Assembly (NCBI GenBank): GCA_001600695.1
Contig: BCKQ01000003.1
Coordinates: 353,849-417,848 of the forward strand
DNA length: 64,000 nt
Direction: 5' to 3'
Source of the DNA: Ascoidea asiatica JCM 7603
Lineage: Eukaryota > Fungi > Ascomycota
Shown: positions 20,255-49,044 of the stretch, in pieces
How the letters are laid out: each line of letters opens with the position of its first letter
Numbering within the stretch: the stretch's first letter is position 1
Program-made: the position numbers and the translations under genes
The notes under the pieces: model-generated
Seen by the model: the letters and a program-made list of their open reading frames with translations, nothing else
Databases searched by the model: none
Told to the model about the DNA's origin: nothing

Positions 20255-20742
20255 AACATTGTGTTTTATGAATCTTTATGAAATTAATTTTATGTAATAT
20301 TTGATTCTGGGTTATATTATTATTATTTTCAAATTTATTTTACTTTTTATTTATTATTTTTCAATATATATTTATACAATTATAAATTTAATAAACATAA
20401 ATCATTTCATTTGCATTCTTTATTAATTGAATTAAATTAAATATATTAATATTCTATGTATAAATTAGATACACTTTTAATAAATTTTAAGAAATATTCA
20501 AAATCACGTGGTGTTACCTAATCAACATAATTTCCAATTTTTTGGATTGATTTTTTGAATTTGAATGTTTTTTTTTTCTTGAATTTTCTTTTTTATTGTG
20601 TTGTTTTTTAGGGGGAAATTTGGAGAATGAAAATTGGAGAATTAAATTTGAATTTGATTTTGCTCCTCTTTCACCTTTTCAGTTTCAACGAACTGAGATA
20701 TCATCCCCATTCAAAGTGCAGTGCTAGTGTTGCAAAGGAAAC

Positions 20743-20922
20743 GGACCCACTGCCCTGGACCCACTGCCCTGGACCCAGCCTGCTGCTCTGCTTCTTTCTC
20801 TGCTTTTTTCTCTGTTTACGCTCGTTCTCCTCTTTTCCCGCTTCAGCTCCCACTCCCCAACAATCGACAATTAGCAGTCAACACAGCCACTCGGTGCACA
20901 GCCACTCGGTGCACAGCCACTC
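20743..20922. repeat. Two GC-rich short tandem repeats: (GGACCCACTGCCCT)x2.5 and (CACAGCCACTCGGTG)x2.7
   Basis: Read directly at 20743-20777 and 20882-20922. Confidence 0.85.
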
Positions 20923-23381
20923 TCTTCCTTCCCCCGAGTCAGCTCCAGGTCGTGTCTCAGAGTCAAAATGTCATGGATTGAATCTAATTGAATCCACAGA
21001 TCTGGGGTTGGGTTTTCGGGGAATGAAAATTATTTCAAATTGAGAAGTCCCTTAAAAATGGTCTCGATTCAATTTTAATTTATTTATAACTGAATTCAAT
21101 GATTAATTATTTGAATCATTGAATACATATTAAGAATCTTAAGAATATTAATAAAATAATTAGGAATAATAAGAATATATTTCTTAATATATTCGTTAAT
21201 AGAATCTTGAATAATCTTCAATAATGCTTAATAACCTTTAATATTAATGGGGTTATGGAGGTATGGAGGTATGGAGTTATGGAATTTAAAATGTTTAAAT
21301 AATGCAATAATGCAATAAAGTAATAAGGTAATTAAAAATGTAATAAAGTGAATATTAAAATCTTAAGATAATGATATTGATAATGATATTGATAATGATA
21401 TTGATAATGATAATGATAAAGAATAATATTTTTTTAAATAAATTCCTCAATATATTTATTATTAATTAATTTATATTAAATTATTAGTCGAGAAATAAAT
21501 TGGTTGGTTATTATTATTCAACTACGGTAGTTAAATTCCATATAATAATATTCTATTCATATACTATATTAAATTATTCAATAATATTCTTCCGTAATTT
21601 AACTGTAATTACTGTATTAATAGTTTTATCTTAAATCAATAAATCCAAAATAATGATTAACTAATGATAACTAATGATAACTAATGATATAAATAATGAT
21701 ATGAATAATGATTAAAATTTATGCATTTAATTTTTTTTTTATAAATTATTCTTTTAAATGAATAATTATTAATATTATATTACAATACAATACAATACAA
21801 TAAAATACAATAAAATACAATACAATCGGACCCGTGATCTAAGTCAAATTGAAATTAAAATAATTTAATCCTTTTTTTTAAAAAAAATTCTAAATTACAT
21901 TTTTTTAATATTAAATGACCCGATAATTAAAAAACCCAAAAAACCCAAAAAACCCGTTACCCATTACCCACGAACATGATATTGAATGCACCGTGGAAAG
22001 GTGCCGGAATTTTTATTCCGGTACAACTGTGCAACTTTGGTTTATTGCTGTAGACCTCTTCTATCGGGATGACAACATATCCGTGATTAAATTATAAGTC
22101 AATTTCAATTCAATTTTACCGGTTGACTCAAAACTTAAATAATGAAAAAGTGTATTTAGTAATATTTTTACTATTCACCACTCCTTTGTTTTATTTTTTA
22201 TTTTTTAAATATTTTATCCCACCAATAAATTCCAAATTAAATTACTAATAAATGTATTTTTAATCATGATCTACTAATAAACTAATAAAATGAAAAATTT
22301 GAAAAATTTGAAAAATTTCACTTGATGACTATTGAATTAATTGAAAGCCTAATAGGATCCTATTAAGTTTATGAAATTTTACGTTCCATTTAATTATTAA
22401 ATAACCGATATCGATAATTGATTTAAATTTATTAATTTGTAATGAAAAAAGAAGCAAAAGAAGAAGCAAGAAGAAGAAAAATGATAAAAAATGATAATTT
22501 TCAATTTCAATTGTAATTCACACCCAGTGATACTGATAAATTATTATCATAGAAATGGATAAATTAATTTTATATCCACTGTGAAAAAACGTGATTTTCA
22601 ATTGAATCAAATTTTTCATTCTTTATTCTTTAAAATCATTTTTTAAAATTATTTTTATTTTGGCCCCGTTTCGGACTTTTTCTGAACCCGTTTTTGCTTC
22701 TGTGGGTCACACCAAATAAATCCCTTCTTGAAACCAAATTTAATCAATAATAATCAATAATAATCAATTACTTAAACAAATTGAGTAAATTACAGATTTA
22801 TTTCAATCAAAAAGAGTCCCACAGTTTTGGACTCTATTCAGAAAACTAATCGGAATTCAATCCCTTTTCAATAAATCATACTGTTTTATTATTATTATTC
22901 AATCAATCAATCAATTAGTTAATCAATAACTACAATTATATTAAGAAATAATATTTAATGGTATGATATCTCATTTAATGAATAATTAATATAATTAAAT
23001 TTGAATATTATCGGATTCTTTATCTTCATATTATTATTAATATTAATATTAATATTAATAATAAAAAAATGTTTGAATGATTTTTGACCACATAAAAGTT
23101 TAAATAAAATTCTATTTTAAATGGAGATACTAATTCTTTTAAATATTTCTTCTACCAAAAATCATAAGAAAATAAATCTTCAAGAACTTTCAAGAACCTT
23201 ACAAATAGAAATGTAAAGTGACGTTCTTGAAATCTTTGGTTTTAATCACTTGAAATAAAAAAAAAAAAAAAGAATTTAAAAGAGAAAACAAGAATAAATT
23301 CAAATTTAAATCAAAATCTTCTTTTCAAAATCTCAAATGAAAAAAAAAAAAATATTTTAATAGGGCTTTTTTTTAAACCAA

Positions 23382-24885: not shown

Positions 24886-27800
24886 TTAAATAACTAATCT
24901 ACCATTATTTGTAATTTCAATCTTCAAACTATTTAACAAATTTGAAACTTCTGGAGTCTTACTTATTTTAACATTTCCATTAATATTTCCAATAACAGTC
25001 CCATTCATATTTCCATTTCCATTTCCATTAATATTTCCATTACTTTTAATATAATTTGAGTTTCTAATTGGTGTTGATGAAGATATCATTGCTTGTTTTA
25101 AATCTTTAACTTTTGGTGAATTATATTTACTACTAGAAATTCTTGATGATGGTCTACGCAGCATTGATTTATTAAATGATAATGGAAATGAATTTAAACT
25201 CAGATTTTCCATTAATCCTCCACTTGAAATTGGTGGTAATAATTTTCCATTAGAATATCCACCAAAATTCTCTGATGATGATCCTAATATTGAATTATTT
25301 CCACCAAATCTTGTATTCAAAAATCTGTTACTACTATTATTTCCATTATTATTGTTATTAATACCATTTCCATTTAAATTTCCATTTCCATTAGCTCCTC
25401 TATTATGAAAGAAATTATTTCTTGGATTTTTATAATCTGATAATTCAATTGTTGAATCAATCCATTGTAAAGGAATTTCTGAACTTAAAACTTTTAAATA
25501 ACTATCAAAATCTTTTCTATCATAATTTAAATTTCTTAAATTATCAATATTAATATTTTCAACATCTTCTAAATATTCTCCCATAATTTCAGAATCTAAT
25601 TTAATTGATTGATACCAATAATTATTAACAACTCTATATTTAATTCTAATTAAAATATCTTTTAAAAATGGTGTCATTGGATGTTTTAAATCTCTTAAAT
25701 TTGTACTTGAATTTGAAATATTTGAATTTTTTTCTTTTAATAAATAATTTTGATCATATTTAATTAAATATTTAACACTAAAATATAAAAATAAATATCC
25801 AATAGAATCTTTTAATTTTTCAATTATTGAAGGTTGAACTAAACTTAATGAAATTTTATCATTTTTATCTTGAATATAATCAATAATAAATTGCCATTCA
25901 AAAAAAAATGAAATACCATTTGAAATTGAATTTATACCAAATTTTTCAATAATTAATTTTAAAATTAAAATAATTTTATTAATTAATTTATTTAATTTAA
26001 ATAAAATTTTTTCATTATCAAAAATTTCTGCTAATTTTAATATTGAACCAGTTTCTAATTTAAGTAAATTTTTAAAAAATTTATCAATTGACCAAAAAAA
26101 ATTAATTAAAGGATTATTAACATTTTGAATAAATTGATGATAATTTGGTATTAATAAATCATTATCATTATCATTTAATTCAATTTTAATATAATTTAAA
26201 AATAAATCTGCAAAATTATTTTGAATTAATAAATTATTTTCAAAATTTAATTTATTATTATTATAACTAAAACATGAAAAACAATCATTCCATAATTCAA
26301 TTGAAGTATTTGATCTTTGAATTGAAGATGTTGAATTTTTTGAAGATTTTTTTAAAACTTTTTTAATAATTTTAATTAAATTTAAAATACAATTTTTATT
26401 GAAATTAATTTCTTCAATTGAAAGTTCATTATAAATTAATTCATTATTACTTGAATTTTTTGAAGATATTTGATCTTGATTATGATTATCATGATTTTCA
26501 ATTGAATTATTATTATTATTATTTGGAGATACTGAATTTGATAATGGATGAATATTATTTTGAGTTGTTGGAGTTGAAGATAAATTTAATAAAGAATGAG
26601 TTAAAGATGCTTTACTTACACCTCTATTTCTTGAAGAAATTAAATTATTATTATTGTTATTGTTATTGTTATTATTATTATTAGGAGTATTAAGATTTGA
26701 AGTTGAATTTATTATTATTGGATCTAAATCAAATAAAGATTGATTTGATTTTTTTAAAAGATCAGATAATTTTAATAATAATTCATCAATAATATCAGAA
26801 ATTTGATCATGATAATAAATATGAGTTGATAAACAACTTATACAATTTGTATAATTATTAATTAATTGAATTGCTAATTTATTTTCATCTGAGATTTGAA
26901 TATTTAATTTATTTAAGTTTGATTCAATATCAATATCTGAGTTTATATCATTTTCATTGTCATTATCAGTATCTAGGTTTGAATTTAAATTTGAATTTGA
27001 ATTTAAGTATGAGATTACTGAATCATTATCAGAATCATTTGTATTATTGTTATTGTTATTGTTATTATTTGTAAGATCATTTAAATTTAAATCAATAATA
27101 TTAAAATTATTATTAATATTATTTAAAGATAAATCATTATTAATTTTTAATAAAATTTTCATTTGTAAATTTAATAATTGTTTTAAAACATCAATAACAG
27201 ATAAACCAATCATATTAACAGAAGAAGATAATAAACCAGAAATTGAATAAGATAAATAAATTTGATAAGTATATTGATTAATTAGATTTGATTTTGAATT
27301 TGAATTTGAATTTGAATTTGAATTTGAATCGAAAGTTAAATCATTTTTTAATTCATTCATTAGAATATTTAAGATTATGAATCTTAATTGAACAGGAACC
27401 CAATAAGTTATAATTTCAATAAGATATTTAAACCAAATTTTATTTATTTTCGTATTTAAATTTTTGTTATTATTATTATTATCGAGTAGATTGTTTTTTA
27501 AGAATTGACAAATAACTTTTGTACAAGAAGATATATTAAAATTGATTGAAGTATTAAAATAAGATTTCAAAGCATTTTTAGCATTTTCTTGTTCTTTGAT
27601 TAAAGATAAATCATTATCATTCATATCATGAATTGAGATAGAATTCTTTAAGTTATTATTATTATTATTATTATTGTTGTTGTTGTTGTTGTTGTTGTTA
27701 TTGTTATTGTTATTGTTATCATTAATATTATCATTATTTTTTTCATTATTATTATCTATATCCTTGATATTATGAATTGAAGATTGATTTGTTTTTGATT

Positions 27801-28578
27801 GAGATATGATACTTTTTCTTTTATTTTTATTTAAGATTAATTGTTGTTGTTGTTGTTGATCTAATTGATTAAAATTTGAAAATAATAAATTTTTTAAATC
27901 TTTAATTTTATAAGTTTTTAATAAAGAAGATAAAATTAAATTAAATGAATTTTTAATTATAATTTCACCAAATGAATTATTATAACCAACTATATTACTT
28001 AAATATTCAGTTGAATTAAGAGATATTATTTGCCAATTTATATTATTGTTATTATTATTATTGTTGTTATTGTTGTTATTGTTTGTTGTAGTATTGGCGG
28101 TTGAATTTTTTTTATTGACATTTAAAAAAAGTTCAGTTAAATTTAAAAAATTTTTAAGAAAATCTCTATCACCATTAAATAAATCATTATTTAAATTTAA
28201 ACAAAATTTTTTAAATAGAGATAAAGACATTAAATTTAAATTTAAATCATTATTAATATAATTATTATTTAAAATAATTTTTAAAATATTTATAATATTA
28301 TTTGAAAAAATATTTAAATTATCATTACATTTATCAATTAAGAAATTTAAAATTATTAAAGAAACTTGTAAATTACCAATTCTTTGATGATAAGAATCTT
28401 TTTCAACTTTTTTTTCAATAAAATTACCAATTTTAACTAATTTAATTCTTCTTGTTGAAGAATAATATAATAAATAACTTAATTCAGATGAATTTGGTTT
28501 TTTATCAATATTACGACCAGGTGGATAACATTGTAATATTAATTTTTGATGTTTTGGTACAAATAAATGTTTTGACAT
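24886..28578 (-). CDS. EFR3: Stt4 PI4-kinase complex scaffold Efr3
   Basis: PKHQKLILQCYP...KPNSSELSYLLYY.STRR.KL.K.G; W.PVQLRF; VNMIGLSVIDVL; L.THIYY.DQ..D. Confidence 0.95.
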   Translation of the reverse strand: MSKHLFVPKHQKLILQCYPPGRNIDKKPNSSELSYLLYYSSTRRIKLVKIGNFIEKKVEKDSYHQRIGNLQVSLIILNFLIDKCNDNLNIFSNNIINILKIILNNNYINNDLNLNLMSLSLFKKFCLNLNNDLFNGDRDFLKNFLNLTELFLNVNKKNSTANTTTNNNNNNNNNNNNNNINWQIISLNSTEYLSNIVGYNNSFGEIIIKNSFNLILSSLLKTYKIKDLKNLLFSNFNQLDQQQQQQLILNKNKRKSIISQSKTNQSSIHNIKDIDNNNEKNNDNINDNNNNNNNNNNNNNNNNNNNNNNLKNSISIHDMNDNDLSLIKEQENAKNALKSYFNTSINFNISSCTKVICQFLKNNLLDNNNNNKNLNTKINKIWFKYLIEIITYWVPVQLRFIILNILMNELKNDLTFDSNSNSNSNSNSKSNLINQYTYQIYLSYSISGLLSSSVNMIGLSVIDVLKQLLNLQMKILLKINNDLSLNNINNNFNIIDLNLNDLTNNNNNNNNNTNDSDNDSVISYLNSNSNLNSNLDTDNDNENDINSDIDIESNLNKLNIQISDENKLAIQLINNYTNCISCLSTHIYYHDQISDIIDELLLKLSDLLKKSNQSLFDLDPIIINSTSNLNTPNNNNNNNNNNNNNLISSRNRGVSKASLTHSLLNLSSTPTTQNNIHPLSNSVSPNNNNNNSIENHDNHNQDQISSKNSSNNELIYNELSIEEINFNKNCILNLIKIIKKVLKKSSKNSTSSIQRSNTSIELWNDCFSCFSYNNNKLNFENNLLIQNNFADLFLNYIKIELNDNDNDLLIPNYHQFIQNVNNPLINFFWSIDKFFKNLLKLETGSILKLAEIFDNEKILFKLNKLINKIILILKLIIEKFGINSISNGISFFFEWQFIIDYIQDKNDKISLSLVQPSIIEKLKDSIGYLFLYFSVKYLIKYDQNYLLKEKNSNISNSSTNLRDLKHPMTPFLKDILIRIKYRVVNNYWYQSIKLDSEIMGEYLEDVENINIDNLRNLNYDRKDFDSYLKVLSSEIPLQWIDSTIELSDYKNPRNNFFHNRGANGNGNLNGNGINNNNNGNNSSNRFLNTRFGGNNSILGSSSENFGGYSNGKLLPPISSGGLMENLSLNSFPLSFNKSMLRRPSSRISSSKYNSPKVKDLKQAMISSSTPIRNSNYIKSNGNINGNGNGNMNGTVIGNINGNVKISKTPEVSNLLNSLKIEITNNGRLVI

Positions 28579-28808
28579 TGGAATTATTATAATTCTTTGA
28601 CCTTTTAATCAATTGATATAATTGATGATTATTTGATTATTTAAATATTTATTCAAATATTGAAGATTTTGTTCATTTTAAAGCCAAATCATGAAATAAA
28701 TGAAATATCAAACATTGCTGATTTTAGAGTCAATTAAAGTTTAAAAGGGCAAATCCGGGCATATCGGAATGTAAATACATTTCCATTCACCGGTTATTAT
28801 AATCCGCA

Positions 28809-28915
28809 GTAATTACCAACTTCACGGATCTACCAACCATTAGGTTCTACCAGTGTAAAGGATCTACCAAGAATTTGGATCTACCAATGGGAAGGATCTA
28901 CCAATTATGGGGATT
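28809..28915 (+). repeat. 17-bp-period array: GGATCTACCAA core plus variable 6-bp spacer
   Basis: Cores start at 28826, 28843 (GGTTCTACCAG), 28860, 28877 and 28894; degenerate copies at 28809 and 28911. Confidence 0.9.
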
Positions 28916-29939
28916 TAATAGTCTTGTGGCTGTGTGGGTGGCAATCAATGTGGCGTTACTTTTCCTAGTATTCCAAAAGAAAAAGAAGATATTTTTGTGT
29001 TGGCGCCAGGAGCTGAGCAGGTGAGCAGCGGAGCGAGCTTTCTCGGCTTTCAGAGAGAGAAGCGACTGCTCACTGGCACTGGCACTGCTCTTACTGCTAT
29101 TACTGCTACTGGCTGGGAACGTTACTGATACAGGCTGTTAATAGCTAACAATCTGACAATATCTGAATATTTAACTACTTAATACTTAATACTTAATACT
29201 TAGTACTTAATACTTAATACTTAATACTTAACACCACTATCAATCACTTAATAATCAATCAATCTTCAATCTTCAATCTTCAATAATCAATCAGTCAGTC
29301 AATAGAAAATCGAGTATCAAATCAAATATACAAAATAATCATATATCAAATTAATATTAAATCAATATTAAATCAATATTAAATCAATATTAAATCAATT
29401 AGATATAATTCAAGAGTATCATTATCATCTATCTGGGATACAAGATATACTAATCATTCCAGACATTCTGGATATATTTCAATCGATTCAGATACTTCTC
29501 ATTCAATTCGAGTTTTGATACTTTACATTCAATTACATCCCTCAATTTATCTTTATAATAATAATTATAATATATCCCCTAATATATTTCACATTTTATT
29601 ATTTCATATCATATAATATTATATTATATTATATTCAATCCATTGCATTCCATTTAAATTCAAATAAGTGTTACAGTTATAATCCCAAGTATAGTTACAG
29701 TTATAGTTATAGATCAAGTTAAATTAGTTCAATTATATTAATCATATTTTCATAAATGATAAATTCAATCAAAAGTTTCAAAAGTTTCAAAAAATATTAA
29801 TTAATATCAGAAATTAAAATAATTTATTACAAAAAATTAAAAAAAAGAAATAAAATTCTATTGAATAAAAGAAAAAAAACATTTAAATTTTTATTATTTA
29901 AAATAATTACTTTGTGTTATTATTCATTACTCTTTAATT

Positions 29940-30242
29940 ATGGGACAGTCTTTAAGTAGAGCTTTATCAAATAATCATTCAACTAATACTGTAACTAATA
30001 ACAATAACAACAATAGCAATATTACTAATACTAATAGTTCTAATAATATTAATAGATCCGTCAAAGGAAATAGAAATAATAGAAATAATAGAAATAGTAA
30101 TTTAATTAATAGAATTAGTAATAATATTTTAAATCTGAATCATAATAGTAATCAAACAAATACAATGAATTCAAGTATGAATTCAAATATAGATTCAAAT
30201 AATTTATCTCATCCTAATAATAATCAATCAATAGATAACAAC

Positions 30243-30283
<41 letters not shown>

Positions 30284-33200
30284 AAGTATTGATAATGATT
30301 CAATTACTTTAACTCCATCTTTAAGAAGAAGAAGACATTCTTCTTTAAATGATATTCCAACTTTAAATAATTCAATTTCTTTAAATGATTCAAATAATCA
30401 ATCAACAAATATTATTAATTCAAATGATACCAATAATAGTAATTCAACTAATTTTGTTTCAACAGTTTCAAGAAGAAGAAATTTAAGAAGAAGATTAACA
30501 AATGTAATAAGTAATTTATCAAATTCAAATACTATCAATAATAATATACCACCTTCAAATTCAACTCAAACTGTAAATTCATTACCTACAACATTATCAA
30601 ATTCAACAAGACAAAAATCATCAAAAAATAATAAATCTAAATCTAAATCTATAAGACCTCCAAGAACTCCTCCAAGACTTAGATCAAGATCAACTCGTTC
30701 AATATCTTCAATAAATCCATTAAATATTATTGCTCAAAATTCTTCAATTCATTCAACTTCTTTAATTCAACCATCTCAATCAAATAATTCAAATAATTCA
30801 AATCAATCACTTTTTGTTCATCCATTTCGTTCAAATCCTTCAAATCCTACAATTAATTCAAGAGCTTCAAGTGTTTTAAATGGTAGAACTTTAAATACAA
30901 ATATTAGATCTAATTTTAATCCATTATTAGCATCAGATTTAAATCTAGTAAATGATAATAATAATGATAATAATAATAGTAATACTAACATTAATAATAA
31001 TAATAATAATAATAATCCATCTACTCATTCAACTCATCTACAATCAATATTAAGAAGTTTAAGAAATAGTCATTCAACAAATCTTTCAAATGAACTTAAT
31101 CAACAAAATTCAAATCTTGCAACTACAAATACAAATAATTCAATAAATTCTATAATTTCAACTAATTCAAATCATTCAAATCATTCAAATAATACAAATA
31201 ATTCAAATAATTCAAATAATTCGGGTTTTAGATTACCTAGATCAAGAAATTCAAATACAAACTTAAATTCTAACTCAGTTCCAGATACTAATACAACAAA
31301 TGATAATAATTTACCACCTTCAACTTCAAATACATCTGTTCCAAGATTACCAAATGATTTACCTGCTTCTGAATCTTTTCAAGCAAGAAATTCAGAATCT
31401 TTTATAAATCAATCAGAAATGTTAAGTAGATTATTAGAAATTGCTGCAACTTCAACTTTATTAACCATGGTTGGTGGTACTTCTATTTTACATGGTACAA
31501 GAATAGATAATAGAAATTTGGTGAATAATAATAATAACAGAATTACACAAACTAATTCTAGAACCAATAATAATTCAAATAATTCTACAAATACTACAAC
31601 AAATAATCAATCAAATAATACTACAAGAAATGTTGATAATTCTCCAATGCGTTTAGTTTCTAATTCAATTTCAAATATAATGAATAATAATATTACATCT
31701 TCAAATGATGCTGATGGAAGTGATTCAACTTTTCAAGAATTTTTAGATGCTTTACATAATGGTTTATTAGCAAATGAATTATTAAATAGTGTTAGAAATT
31801 CTATTATTAGAAGAAATAGACAATCTGATACACCAAATAATACTTCAAATAATACTAATACATCAACCAATAATACATCAACTAATAATACATCAGTTAA
31901 TAATACATCTCAGAATATTGCAAGTAATTCTGATCAAATATTATTAGATGGTAATTCTAATAATAATAATAACACTAATAATAATAATAATATTAATAAT
32001 AATAATAATATTACCAATAATGTGAATACTTCAATTCCCCAGTCTACAGACAATTCTATACCACCTATAACTTTAACAACAGATTCCATTTCAATTGAAT
32101 CTCCACCAAATCAACCAATGTCCTTTTTTAGAGCATTTAGATTTGATTCAAATATAGAACAAAATCAAGCAGAACCTCATTCAGTTCCAGTGATCATTGT
32201 AGGTGTTCGATCTATACCTCCAGGTTCAAGAGAAGATGAAACTAGAACTAATATTACTACTACCACTAATACTACAGCAGGACCTATACATGAACCTTTA
32301 TTAAATAGAAATACTACTAATACTAATATTAATTTAACAAGTGGAACTTCACGAAATGAAAATATGGTTCCTCAAACAGTTTCTATAAGTGCTCAAGAAG
32401 ATTTAAATAGTGGTAGAAGAAGAGGATTACGTTCACTTTATTCTAATAGTAATTCTAATAGGCGTTTTAGTCGAAGACATCTTGGTTCGAGTGATACCAG
32501 TCTGAATGATGATGATGATGATGATGATGACGATGATGACGATGATGATGCTGCCATTTCTAATTTACCTACTTGGGGAAGAAGGACAAGAAGAAGAGCA
32601 ATGAGAATTCCACGTCATACTGGAATACCACATAGACCTTTAAATTTTGCTGCTGAAAGAGACGATAGAATTCATTTAGCAAATTCAAGATCTTCAGATT
32701 CAATTTCTCGTGAACAAGCAAGACAATGGGTTATATTTGTTGTTGGAAATTCATTTCAATCAGATCATCCAATATTGACAGCTCCTTCATTAATGTCAGA
32801 AAATCCAACATATGAAGATTTATTAGCTTTACAAAATTTATTAGGAAATGTTAAACAACCAACTGCTAGTCAATCAGAAGTTGATGAAGCTGGTGGTTTA
32901 GTTAAAATAATGGTTCGAGCTTCAAAAATTCAAAATTCATCAACAAAAAATTCATTAAAAAGTACAGAACTGAATCAAGAACGTCCTGGATTAGATTCTG
33001 AAGTATCTACATCATCAATATCACAAAATGGAAGTATTAATGGTAATGGTAAGAAAAGAATTTCATCATATATTTCTAATAAATTTAAAAAAAATAAAAC
33101 TAATTTAGTTTCATCAGATACTAAAAGAAATTTAAGAAATAAAGAAGGATTAAAAGATGATTTAAATATAAATGGAATTAATAGTAAAAATTTAGAAAAA

Positions 33201-33539
33201 TCAGAAGATTCAGATTTCTCAAAAGTTAAAAAATCAAATGAAACTACTACTATAAAAAATGAAGAAAAATGTACATTTGTTAATAAAACTGAAAAATGTG
33301 CTATATGTTTAACAGAATATGAAACAGGAGATATTGGTAGACGATTAAATCAATGTGATCATTTATTTCATAAGGATTGTATTGATCTTTGGTTAACCAC
33401 AGGTAAAAATTCATGTCCATTATGTAGAACTAAAGGTGTAAATCAAAATCAAGAATCTACAATAGGAAATTCAGGTTCAACAAATAATTTAGTTTCTAGT
33501 ACAACTACAACTACAACTACTACAACTCAACGTTTATGA
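29940..33539 (+). CDS. Large N/S/T-rich protein with C-terminal RING-H2 finger (putative E3 ligase)
   Basis: CAICLTEY...CDHLFHKDCIDLWLTTGKNSCPLCR; ENPTYEDLLAL..LLG.VK block; MGQSLS N-terminus is a possible myristoylation site. Confidence 0.85.
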
Positions 33540-47127: not shown

Positions 47128-47766
47128 TTAACAAGCACAATTATCAGAATTTGAATCAGCATTATTATTTAAATCAATTCTATCATTATTTAAATTATTT
47201 GGATTAATATTTTGTTGATTTAATTGATTTGGATCAGGTATTTTATTACCAATAGCTAAAAATACATCATTTACATTAAGACCAGTTTTTGCACTTGTTT
47301 CAAAAAATAATAAATTTTCTTCATTTGCTAAATTTTTACCTTCATCAATTGAAATTTTTCTTTCATTTTCATTACCATTTAAAGTTAAATCTAATTTATT
47401 TGCAACTAAAGCAATTATAATATTTTTTGAAGCTTGATCATGTAATTCTTTAACCCAATGTCTTGCTTTTATAAAACTTTGTGGTTTTGTAATATCATAA
47501 ACAACTAAAGCACATTGAGCATTTCTATAATACATTGGAGCTAATGATGCAAATCTTTCTTGACCTGCAGTATCCCAAATTTCAAATTTTATTGTTCTAT
47601 CATTTATTTGACATCTTTGAGTTAAAAATGCTGCACCTATAGTTGGTTCTTTATTTTCTTGAAAATCATTTGAAACAAATCTTAAAACTAAAGAAGATTT
47701 ACCAACTGCAGCTTCTCCTAATAAAACTAATTTTACTGAAGTTGTTGAAGTTCTAGGAGTTGCCAT
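47128..47766 (-). CDS. VPS21: Rab5-family GTPase
   Basis: [58 protein letters not shown], CxC C-terminus. Confidence 0.93.
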
Positions 47767-49044
47767 ATTTTATTCTTCTTTACTTTACTTTTTTATGATT
47801 ATTCTTTATATTTTATTAAACAAATTTGATAAATTGATAAAATAAGGTAATTTTTTAATACTATATTATAATAACAAGATAATAACAAGCAAACTGAGAT
47901 TTGATAAGAATATTCGAATAGAAGTAATTTATCTATTATAAGATCTCAATTAAGTTCTAACCAGAGATATATTTCGTTATATGATTCGATATGTCTTAAT
48001 ATACATTCGATATATATTGAATACTTATTGATTTCTTTATTTATTTTGTTTATTATTATTTATTATATTATTTATACATTTGATTATTACAAATGTTTAT
48101 CGTCAGTTCAAAAGTTTCCGGTACGTATCAATGATTCAAATTTAACCTTTTTATCTGTCCACTGCAAACAAACGAAGAAAATAAGAGATAAAGGCTTATG
48201 GAGCAGGCAGGTGACTGGAACGAGACCACTTGTCCGGAACTTTTTTTTTTTATTTTTAGTCAGGTGCCTTTACAAATCCATATTTGTGTCACTTTTAAAT
48301 CATGTGATATTTACAAGACCATTTATCTGGGTGTTTTATTTTGAACAGGTGACATGCGTGAAACCAATTTATTGGATGTAATTATTATGTGACTGGGTTG
48401 AGACCGTGGTAACGGAAGAAACCAGCTTTGTGGTTTTTGTCATTTTACTGTATAAAAATATATTTATTTTCTGTGATATAGAAACTAGACCTAAAAAATA
48501 TACTGAAATCATATGAGTTTAAATTTAAACAATTTTAATATTATTATTATTACTATTATTATTATCTTATTATGTTATTATTATTATGTGTTGAGTAGAA
48601 GATGACAAAAAGAAATCAATAAAAACAATCAGGGGATGAATACTGGAACTACCAAGGAATGTTCATCTAGTTTCTAACAAATATTCCTTTAAAAAAACTC
48701 TGATAAAAAAGTGGTGATTATAATAAAAAGTATTTGACAACAAAAAAAGTAAAAGAAATTATAAAAATATTGATAAAATTAACAATTAAAATATAAATAG
48801 TATTGGTATAATAAAAGAAAATAACAAAAATCGATAATAAAAAAATCTGATATAAAAAACTTAAGAAAACTAACAAACTAACATATGAATCAAACCAAAA
48901 AAGTTACCTTGTAATTGCAAATCTGCTTATTTAAAATAAAAGGATAAGTTAATATAGAAAAACATGTGAGAAAAACTTTGAAAAAAAATGACAATATAAA
49001 GCTGAATATTTGAAAAAAAAAAAAAAAGTAAAAAAGCATATAGA

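Follow-up and report, generated by a model that had tools for sequence, protein, structure and literature searches.

A 17-bp phased array of CCA-N6-TGG sites in the EFR3/RING-H2 divergent promoter of Ascoidea asiatica: close-packed candidate sites for a putative general regulatory factor

The DNA analysed here is a stretch of 64 kb from the yeast Ascoidea asiatica, hereafter called the window, in which a short tandem array with a period of 17 bp lies between two divergent genes. On the minus strand is the EFR3 gene (24886–28578; PF21072, E = 1.6e-44), with its ATG about 235 bp from the array; on the plus strand is the gene for a RING-H2 protein (29940–33539; PF13639, E = 6e-12), with its ATG at a distance of about 1,025 bp. 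These flanking genes agree with an earlier note on this DNA, which had placed the array in an EFR3/RING-H2 divergent promoter. The window (1–64000) has 22.4% GC overall, and its DNA outside ORFs of at least 150 aa is slightly richer, at 24.6%, because small GC islands occupy promoters. In the EFR3/RING-H2 intergene, which otherwise has 5–25% GC, a GC-rich island of 32–59% GC was found at 28700–29150 in the GC profile. It is presumed to be the regulatory core of the divergent promoter, and the array lies in its left part. Between the island and the RING gene, Tandem Repeats Finder (TRF) detected microsatellites at 29166–29400, namely (AATACTT)9, (TCAATCT)5 and (AATCAATATTA)5-6, which are homogeneous slippage repeats, unlike the array. 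No ORF of at least 65 aa lies on the array, the longest in the intergene being a 64-aa ORF with a GTG start (28934–29128) just to its right.

The array itself was re-found in the sequence as it had been described. The element GGATCTACCAA begins at 28826, 28860, 28877 and 28894, a variant, GGTTCTACCAG, begins at 28843, and degenerate units stand at the two ends (GTAATTACCAA at 28809 and GGATTTAATAG at 28911). The spacing from unit to unit is exactly 17 bp throughout, and no two of the six hexamers between them are alike. TRF detected the array with periods of 17 and 34, and matches to the core with at most one mismatch numbered 5 in the window vs 0.49 expected, a count reached in none of 100 shuffles. 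Across 28813–28914 the core is thus near-invariant, with spacers at random-level identity, apart from a weak 34-bp echo (spacer identity 0.5 and 0.42 at lags 2 and 4, and 0.17 at lags 1 and 3). As a separate observation, the whole 7-base centre of the first site of the array (28813–28829), ACTTCAC, recurs in an isolated site at C6:604498-604514, and C8:398507 has ACTTCAT; we put the probability of this by chance at roughly 0.05.

Our scan of the 20.3-Mb genome revealed that this array belongs to a family. The 11-mer core has 16 exact copies in the genome vs 1 for the control, clustered at multiples of 17. The two-unit pattern GGNNNTACC-N8-GGNNNTACC gave 62 matches vs 0, and a relaxed phase pattern, defined by the C/G arm bases only and with no TA, gave 119 vs 7, at about 25 loci. 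Further copies of the core and of the 17-bp period, which the earlier note had left to a genome scan, were therefore found. The arrays consist of 2 to 14 units, always in 17-bp phase, and their cores are GGATCTACC, GGTACTACC or GGTAGTACC.

The repeat can be parsed as a near-palindrome in two ways, either as a core GGTA-S-TACC or as TACCA-N6-TGGTA, which runs across the supposed spacer. Four tests favour the second parsing: the array ends and the counts of the contiguous core, of isolated sites and of CCA-N6-TGG. The ends were compared in 19 arrays genome-wide, against a background dinucleotide frequency of 1.5%. One period before the first full core, the arm position held CC in 18 of 19 arrays and GG in 2; one period after the last full core, GG was found in 17 of 19 and CC in 1. 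Arrays therefore open with a CCA arm and close with a GG arm, so that n cores make n + 1 bipartite sites. In the EFR3/RING-H2 array the left boundary is an orphan 5' arm, TTACCA (28813–28818, + strand), with no GG ahead of it, and the right boundary is an orphan 3' arm, GGAT (28911–28914, + strand), followed by TTAAT in place of CTACCA. With these ends the array at 28813–28914 comprises six abutting sites (28813–28829, 28830–28846, 28847–28863, 28864–28880, 28881–28897 and 28898–28914), each of the form xTACCA-N7-GGWT. Outside arrays, the contiguous GGWWCTACCA occurs in the genome at about the control level (~48 vs 46). Isolated CTACCA-N7-GGAT, in contrast, is about 2.4-fold more frequent than the same arms at gaps 4–6 or 8–10 (21 vs ~9), and CTACCA-N7-GGWW totals 141 vs 44 for the control. 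Perfect 5+5 palindromes with variable gaps gave a weak genome-wide signal, because coding periodicity dominates. The repeating unit is a bipartite quasi-palindrome, (C)TACCA-N6-(T)GGWW, present here in six abutted copies with one junction base per unit. The 11-bp core with a 6-bp spacer, proposed earlier as the unit, is descriptive only; the functional register is shifted, and the palindrome spans the former spacer.

The minimal motif, CCA-N6-TGG, is abundant well beyond the arrays. We counted 3,357 copies in the genome vs 975 for the reversed control and 1,420 at N7 spacing. The window has 19 copies vs 3–9 for other gaps. Although more than half of the window (57%) is covered by ORFs of 150 aa or longer, 17 of these 19 copies are intergenic; 58% of the copies with other gaps are coding. 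Controls with a CC-to-GG gap of N6, the CArG spacing, gave no enrichment in the window. Isolated sites in the window include three that are not in 17-bp phase (48319, 48364 and 48422, within 48319–48433), 550–660 bp upstream of a minus-strand gene at 47128–47766, and four in a long intergene (20534, 20747, 20761 and 20994, within 20534–21005). At 20747–20772 two of the latter stand 14 bp apart and come from a tandem copy of GGACCCACTGCCCT, a second, tighter mode of motif duplication. The 18 other array loci contain 21 isolated CCA-N6-TGG sites. Each of these is at most about 190 bp from its array, and the other 2.6 kb of every locus is free of them; arrays are therefore the cores of larger site clusters. 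The spacing scan also met a dispersed repeat family with CTACCAA(C/G)CAGTGAGGGAT (C2:2130425, C3:539609, C5:137970, C4:805531, C4:810773, C10:378006 and C1:8048), which gives false matches at gap 9. The Cbf1 word TCACGTG, used as a positive control, had 1,346 copies in the genome vs 412, a 3.3-fold enrichment about the same as that of CCA-N6-TGG, and the Reb1 word TTACCCG was not enriched (639 vs 711 in the control). CACGTG was seen directly beside arrays at three loci (L004, L010 and L031).

Array sites and isolated sites differ in their flanks. Before CCA, array sites have TA and isolated sites prefer purines, and the base at the junction between two array sites is C or G in 84%. One explanation is that the arrays are read by a protein other than that of the dispersed CCA-N6-TGG, which would recognise the contiguous junction GG-WW-S-TACCA, as in the earlier parsing, with the 17-bp phase reflecting cooperative polymerisation. 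The junctions within arrays (GGATCTACCA or GGTACTACCA) are indeed much more uniform than the flanks of isolated sites, and the relaxed phase search gave almost no arrays without TACC. However, the contiguous core lacks enrichment outside arrays, the array ends consistently stop at half-cores, and out-of-phase CCA-N6-TGG sites crowd every array. We therefore regard a separate array protein with this contiguous target as unlikely. Since the flank preference differs and the site is only quasi-symmetric, arrays of bipartite sites might represent a particular form with high affinity, or might be the target of a related protein distinct from that of the isolated sites.

The arms and the centre of the sites differ strongly in constraint. 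Among 87 array sites, CC and GG never vary, and the base next to them is A after CC in 86% and T before GG in 66%, although the arrays were collected by their arms, so that the fixed CC and GG partly reflect this collection and the apparent arm conservation is inflated. In the EFR3/RING-H2 array, T precedes GG in only 1 of 6 sites. The six central positions carry 0–0.15 bit each, and spacer identity is 0.34 within arrays vs 0.28 between arrays, which is near random. Some arrays keep identical neighbouring units, for example that at C1:462767. We conclude from these patterns that the arrays grew by tandem duplication and then lost spacer similarity while keeping the arms; this retention of arms beside randomised spacers points to selection on the arms.

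Traces of duplication are also what a neutral, decaying minisatellite would leave, and both the identical units at C1:462767 and the 34-bp echo in the EFR3/RING-H2 array speak for recent duplication of units. A neutral minisatellite, however, should diverge evenly and be free in its location. Here the centre is at 0–0.15 bit vs biased arms, spacers are randomised with the arms retained, arrays lie strictly in promoter-bearing intergenes, and the motif is enriched as single sites as well. A remnant of a dispersed mobile element, the other form of this explanation, should bring homologous flanks. All-against-all blastn of the masked flanks of different array loci found low-complexity matches only, with one exception: L045:535-1473 and L048:1586-2620 (C10:~681 kb and C36:~15 kb) have about 960 bp of flank in common, in opposite orientation and reaching the array, with 85% identity over 669 bp and 76% over 291 bp. 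This common flank, which could be a segmental duplication or an array-carrying repeat element, speaks for a mobile remnant. Since the flanks are unrelated apart from this pair, the arrays are not borne by a common mobile element. With some 25 independent loci sharing the same phase and motif, we consider decaying minisatellites or mobile remnants highly improbable.

The location of the arrays is likewise constrained. None of 19 lies within a credible gene, and of the 13 that could be classified within 3-kb loci, 10 occupy divergent promoters, 3 precede a gene in tandem intergenes and 0 lie in convergent intergenes. Their distances to ATGs are 230–900 bp, and they occur in both orientations relative to the neighbouring genes. 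By Pfam, the neighbours are functionally unrelated: EFR3, RING-H2, TFIIS, VPS13, indoleamine dioxygenase, an Hrd1-like ligase and a kinase, and likewise a Mnn10-type transferase, a ThiF-type enzyme, an acyl-CoA thioesterase and others.

The short distance to the EFR3 ATG makes transcription through the array possible, and the repeats might then act in RNA, as a protein-binding or structural motif repeated in a long 5' UTR or a non-coding transcript. Against such a role, searches found no tRNA and no Rfam family on the array, and single-strand folding of the array was no better than that of shuffles (z = -0.89). The motif is moreover palindromic, and the occurrence of arrays in both orientations fits a role of the DNA rather than of RNA, so that we give action at the RNA level hardly any weight.

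The motif could also mark replication origins, as a site for ORC or another origin factor in a genome too AT-rich for an AT-rich consensus, with the arrays as strong, iteron-like origins. The sites are GC-containing words in GC-poor intergenes, some yeasts put origins at promoter-associated GC-rich motifs, and a few thousand clustered sites is not an absurd number for origins. A dimer-type palindrome with a free centre is, however, unlike known ORC sites, and the placement of the arrays is skewed to divergent promoters (10 of 13), with none in convergent intergenes. An origin mark thus appears very unlikely. The analogies to CRISPR and to iterons or replication elements drawn in the earlier note were left without support by the eukaryotic promoter context and the preference for divergent promoters. 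The arrays do resemble plasmid iterons and CRISPR in their constant repeats, fixed period and variable sequence between, but they lie in eukaryotic chromosomal promoters with no cas genes or origin context, and the variable part is the centre of a binding site, not an acquired spacer. CRISPR arrays occur in prokaryotes, together with a leader and cas genes, and have repeats of about 23–50 bp with spacers about as long; here a repeat of 11 bp and a spacer of 6 bp stand in a eukaryotic genome with EFR3 and RING genes.

Comparison with other DNA gave no further arrays of this kind. The nearest named EFR3 homologue is from Saccharomycopsis (37% identity), and no motif was found in 1.25 kb upstream of the nearest reachable EFR3 homologue (40% protein identity). 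For Saccharomycopsis crataegensis, a 22-kb sample gave three intergenic N6 sites, a hint that was gone in a 33-kb sample, where the N6 count equals that of other spacings. In this species (BTFZ01000001.1:13204-46517) the genes around EFR3 differ from those of the window, with no synteny, and EFR3 translated under the standard code does not give the database protein, as expected for a CUG-Ser yeast. A metagenome scan for phased arrays returned only single matches due to chance and three 17-bp satellites of the ordinary, homogeneous kind, in which the spacers do not vary. On this thin basis of one distant EFR3 promoter, a 33-kb sample and a metagenome scan, the motif looks lineage-restricted.

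Among known systems, the sites of general regulatory factors (GRFs) offer the closest likeness in distribution. The sites of Reb1, Abf1, Rap1, Cbf1, Mcm1 and Tbf1 in the nucleosome-depleted promoters of budding yeasts also number in the thousands, are nearly confined to promoter intergenes, and stand beside unrelated genes, often in divergent promoters. The present motif shows what marks such sites, namely over-representation at a fixed geometry in the promoter regions of functionally unrelated genes. It differs in that it matches none of the six factors and in that close-packed phased arrays of 3–14 sites are not usual for GRFs. Reb1 in particular was rejected, since its motif differs and its word TTACCCG is not over-represented. 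The MADS-type sites of Mcm1 and SRF, CC(A/T)6GG and often TTACC...GGTAA, have similar palindromic CC...GG arms, TA-type flanks and dimer-type geometry, but a CArG site was rejected because 8 bp rather than 6 separate CC from GG here and the centre shows no A/T constraint. Zinc-cluster (Gal4-type) sites likewise have short triplet arms, a fixed free spacer and several sites per promoter, and the Gal4 site itself is 17 bp long (CGG-N11-CCG, UAS-GAL). The arms here are CCA/TGG in everted orientation, however, not CGG/CCG, and the distribution is general rather than that of one pathway. Homotypic clusters of transcription-factor sites grown by tandem duplication share the traces of unit duplication, the selection on the site, the free sequence between and the promoter location; the present arrays depart from the usual clusters in their extreme packing, with sites abutting and one junction base, and in the same 17-bp phase at about 25 independent loci. 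To our knowledge, the spacing or register fits none of the TTF-I Sal-box core, the tRNA B-box or the NF-I, E2 and CTCF sites. A literature search by motif strings, which was not exhaustive, returned only primers and BstXI sites and nothing relevant. In these comparisons the motif matches no known factor.

From the anatomy of the sequence, the genome-wide distribution and the contrast between arms and spacers, which were computed, we infer the binding of a protein, its dimer geometry and a role in chromatin. With a probability of about 0.65, the six close-packed sites of the array form a homotypic cluster for one putative, abundant, sequence-specific double-stranded-DNA-binding protein of the general-regulatory-factor type, probably a dimer. 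The earlier proposal of a binding-protein array in the EFR3/RING-H2 divergent promoter is strengthened by the phased copies elsewhere, by conserved arms with random spacers and by the restriction to promoter-bearing intergenes, but it has to give up its contiguous 11-bp core. Each site consists of two arms, W-W-C-C-A and T-G-G-W-W (mostly CTACCA and GGAT or GGTA in the arrays), with six unconstrained bases between. About one helical turn separates the centres of the arms, the classic arrangement for a dimer, which would contact consecutive major grooves on the same face of the DNA. The 17-bp period arises because a single base lies between the end of one site and the start of the next; 17 bp may simply be the closest packing of a site of 16–18 bp. 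Successive dimers at this spacing would be rotated by about 220 degrees, so that six dimers could coat about 100 bp without clash.

Single or loosely clustered, the motif is present in a large share of the promoters of the genome, beside functionally unrelated genes, and these unrelated neighbours suggest a factor acting like a general regulatory factor and not like a pathway regulator. The array would keep the GC-rich core of the EFR3/RING-H2 promoter nucleosome-free, or would insulate its two sides. Such nucleosome exclusion or insulation would most likely be its job, by analogy with known GRFs, with a strong upstream activating element as a close alternative; the GRF-like distribution, the enrichment at the level of the Cbf1 word and the lack of enrichment of the Reb1 word favour the nucleosome-excluding or insulating role. 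A tentative extension, which we hold to be possible rather than probable, is that this lineage uses a pioneer-type CCA-N6-TGG factor in place of promoter opening of the Reb1/Abf1 type, with about 25 promoters amplified to 17-bp arrays on which dimers would form a continuous spiral coat, a nucleosome barrier or insulator between divergent genes.

Nucleosome-free promoters are established by general regulatory factors, which are known to be replaced between yeast lineages. A motif with a few thousand sites, enriched like the Cbf1 word and with no described match, suggests that this has happened in a yeast that is extremely AT-rich and has been little studied. The arrays, with 6 to 14 sites, would be natural multimerised baits for purifying the putative factor, and they may serve as a natural test of how densely dimers can tile DNA and of the effect of such tiling on chromatin and divergent transcription.
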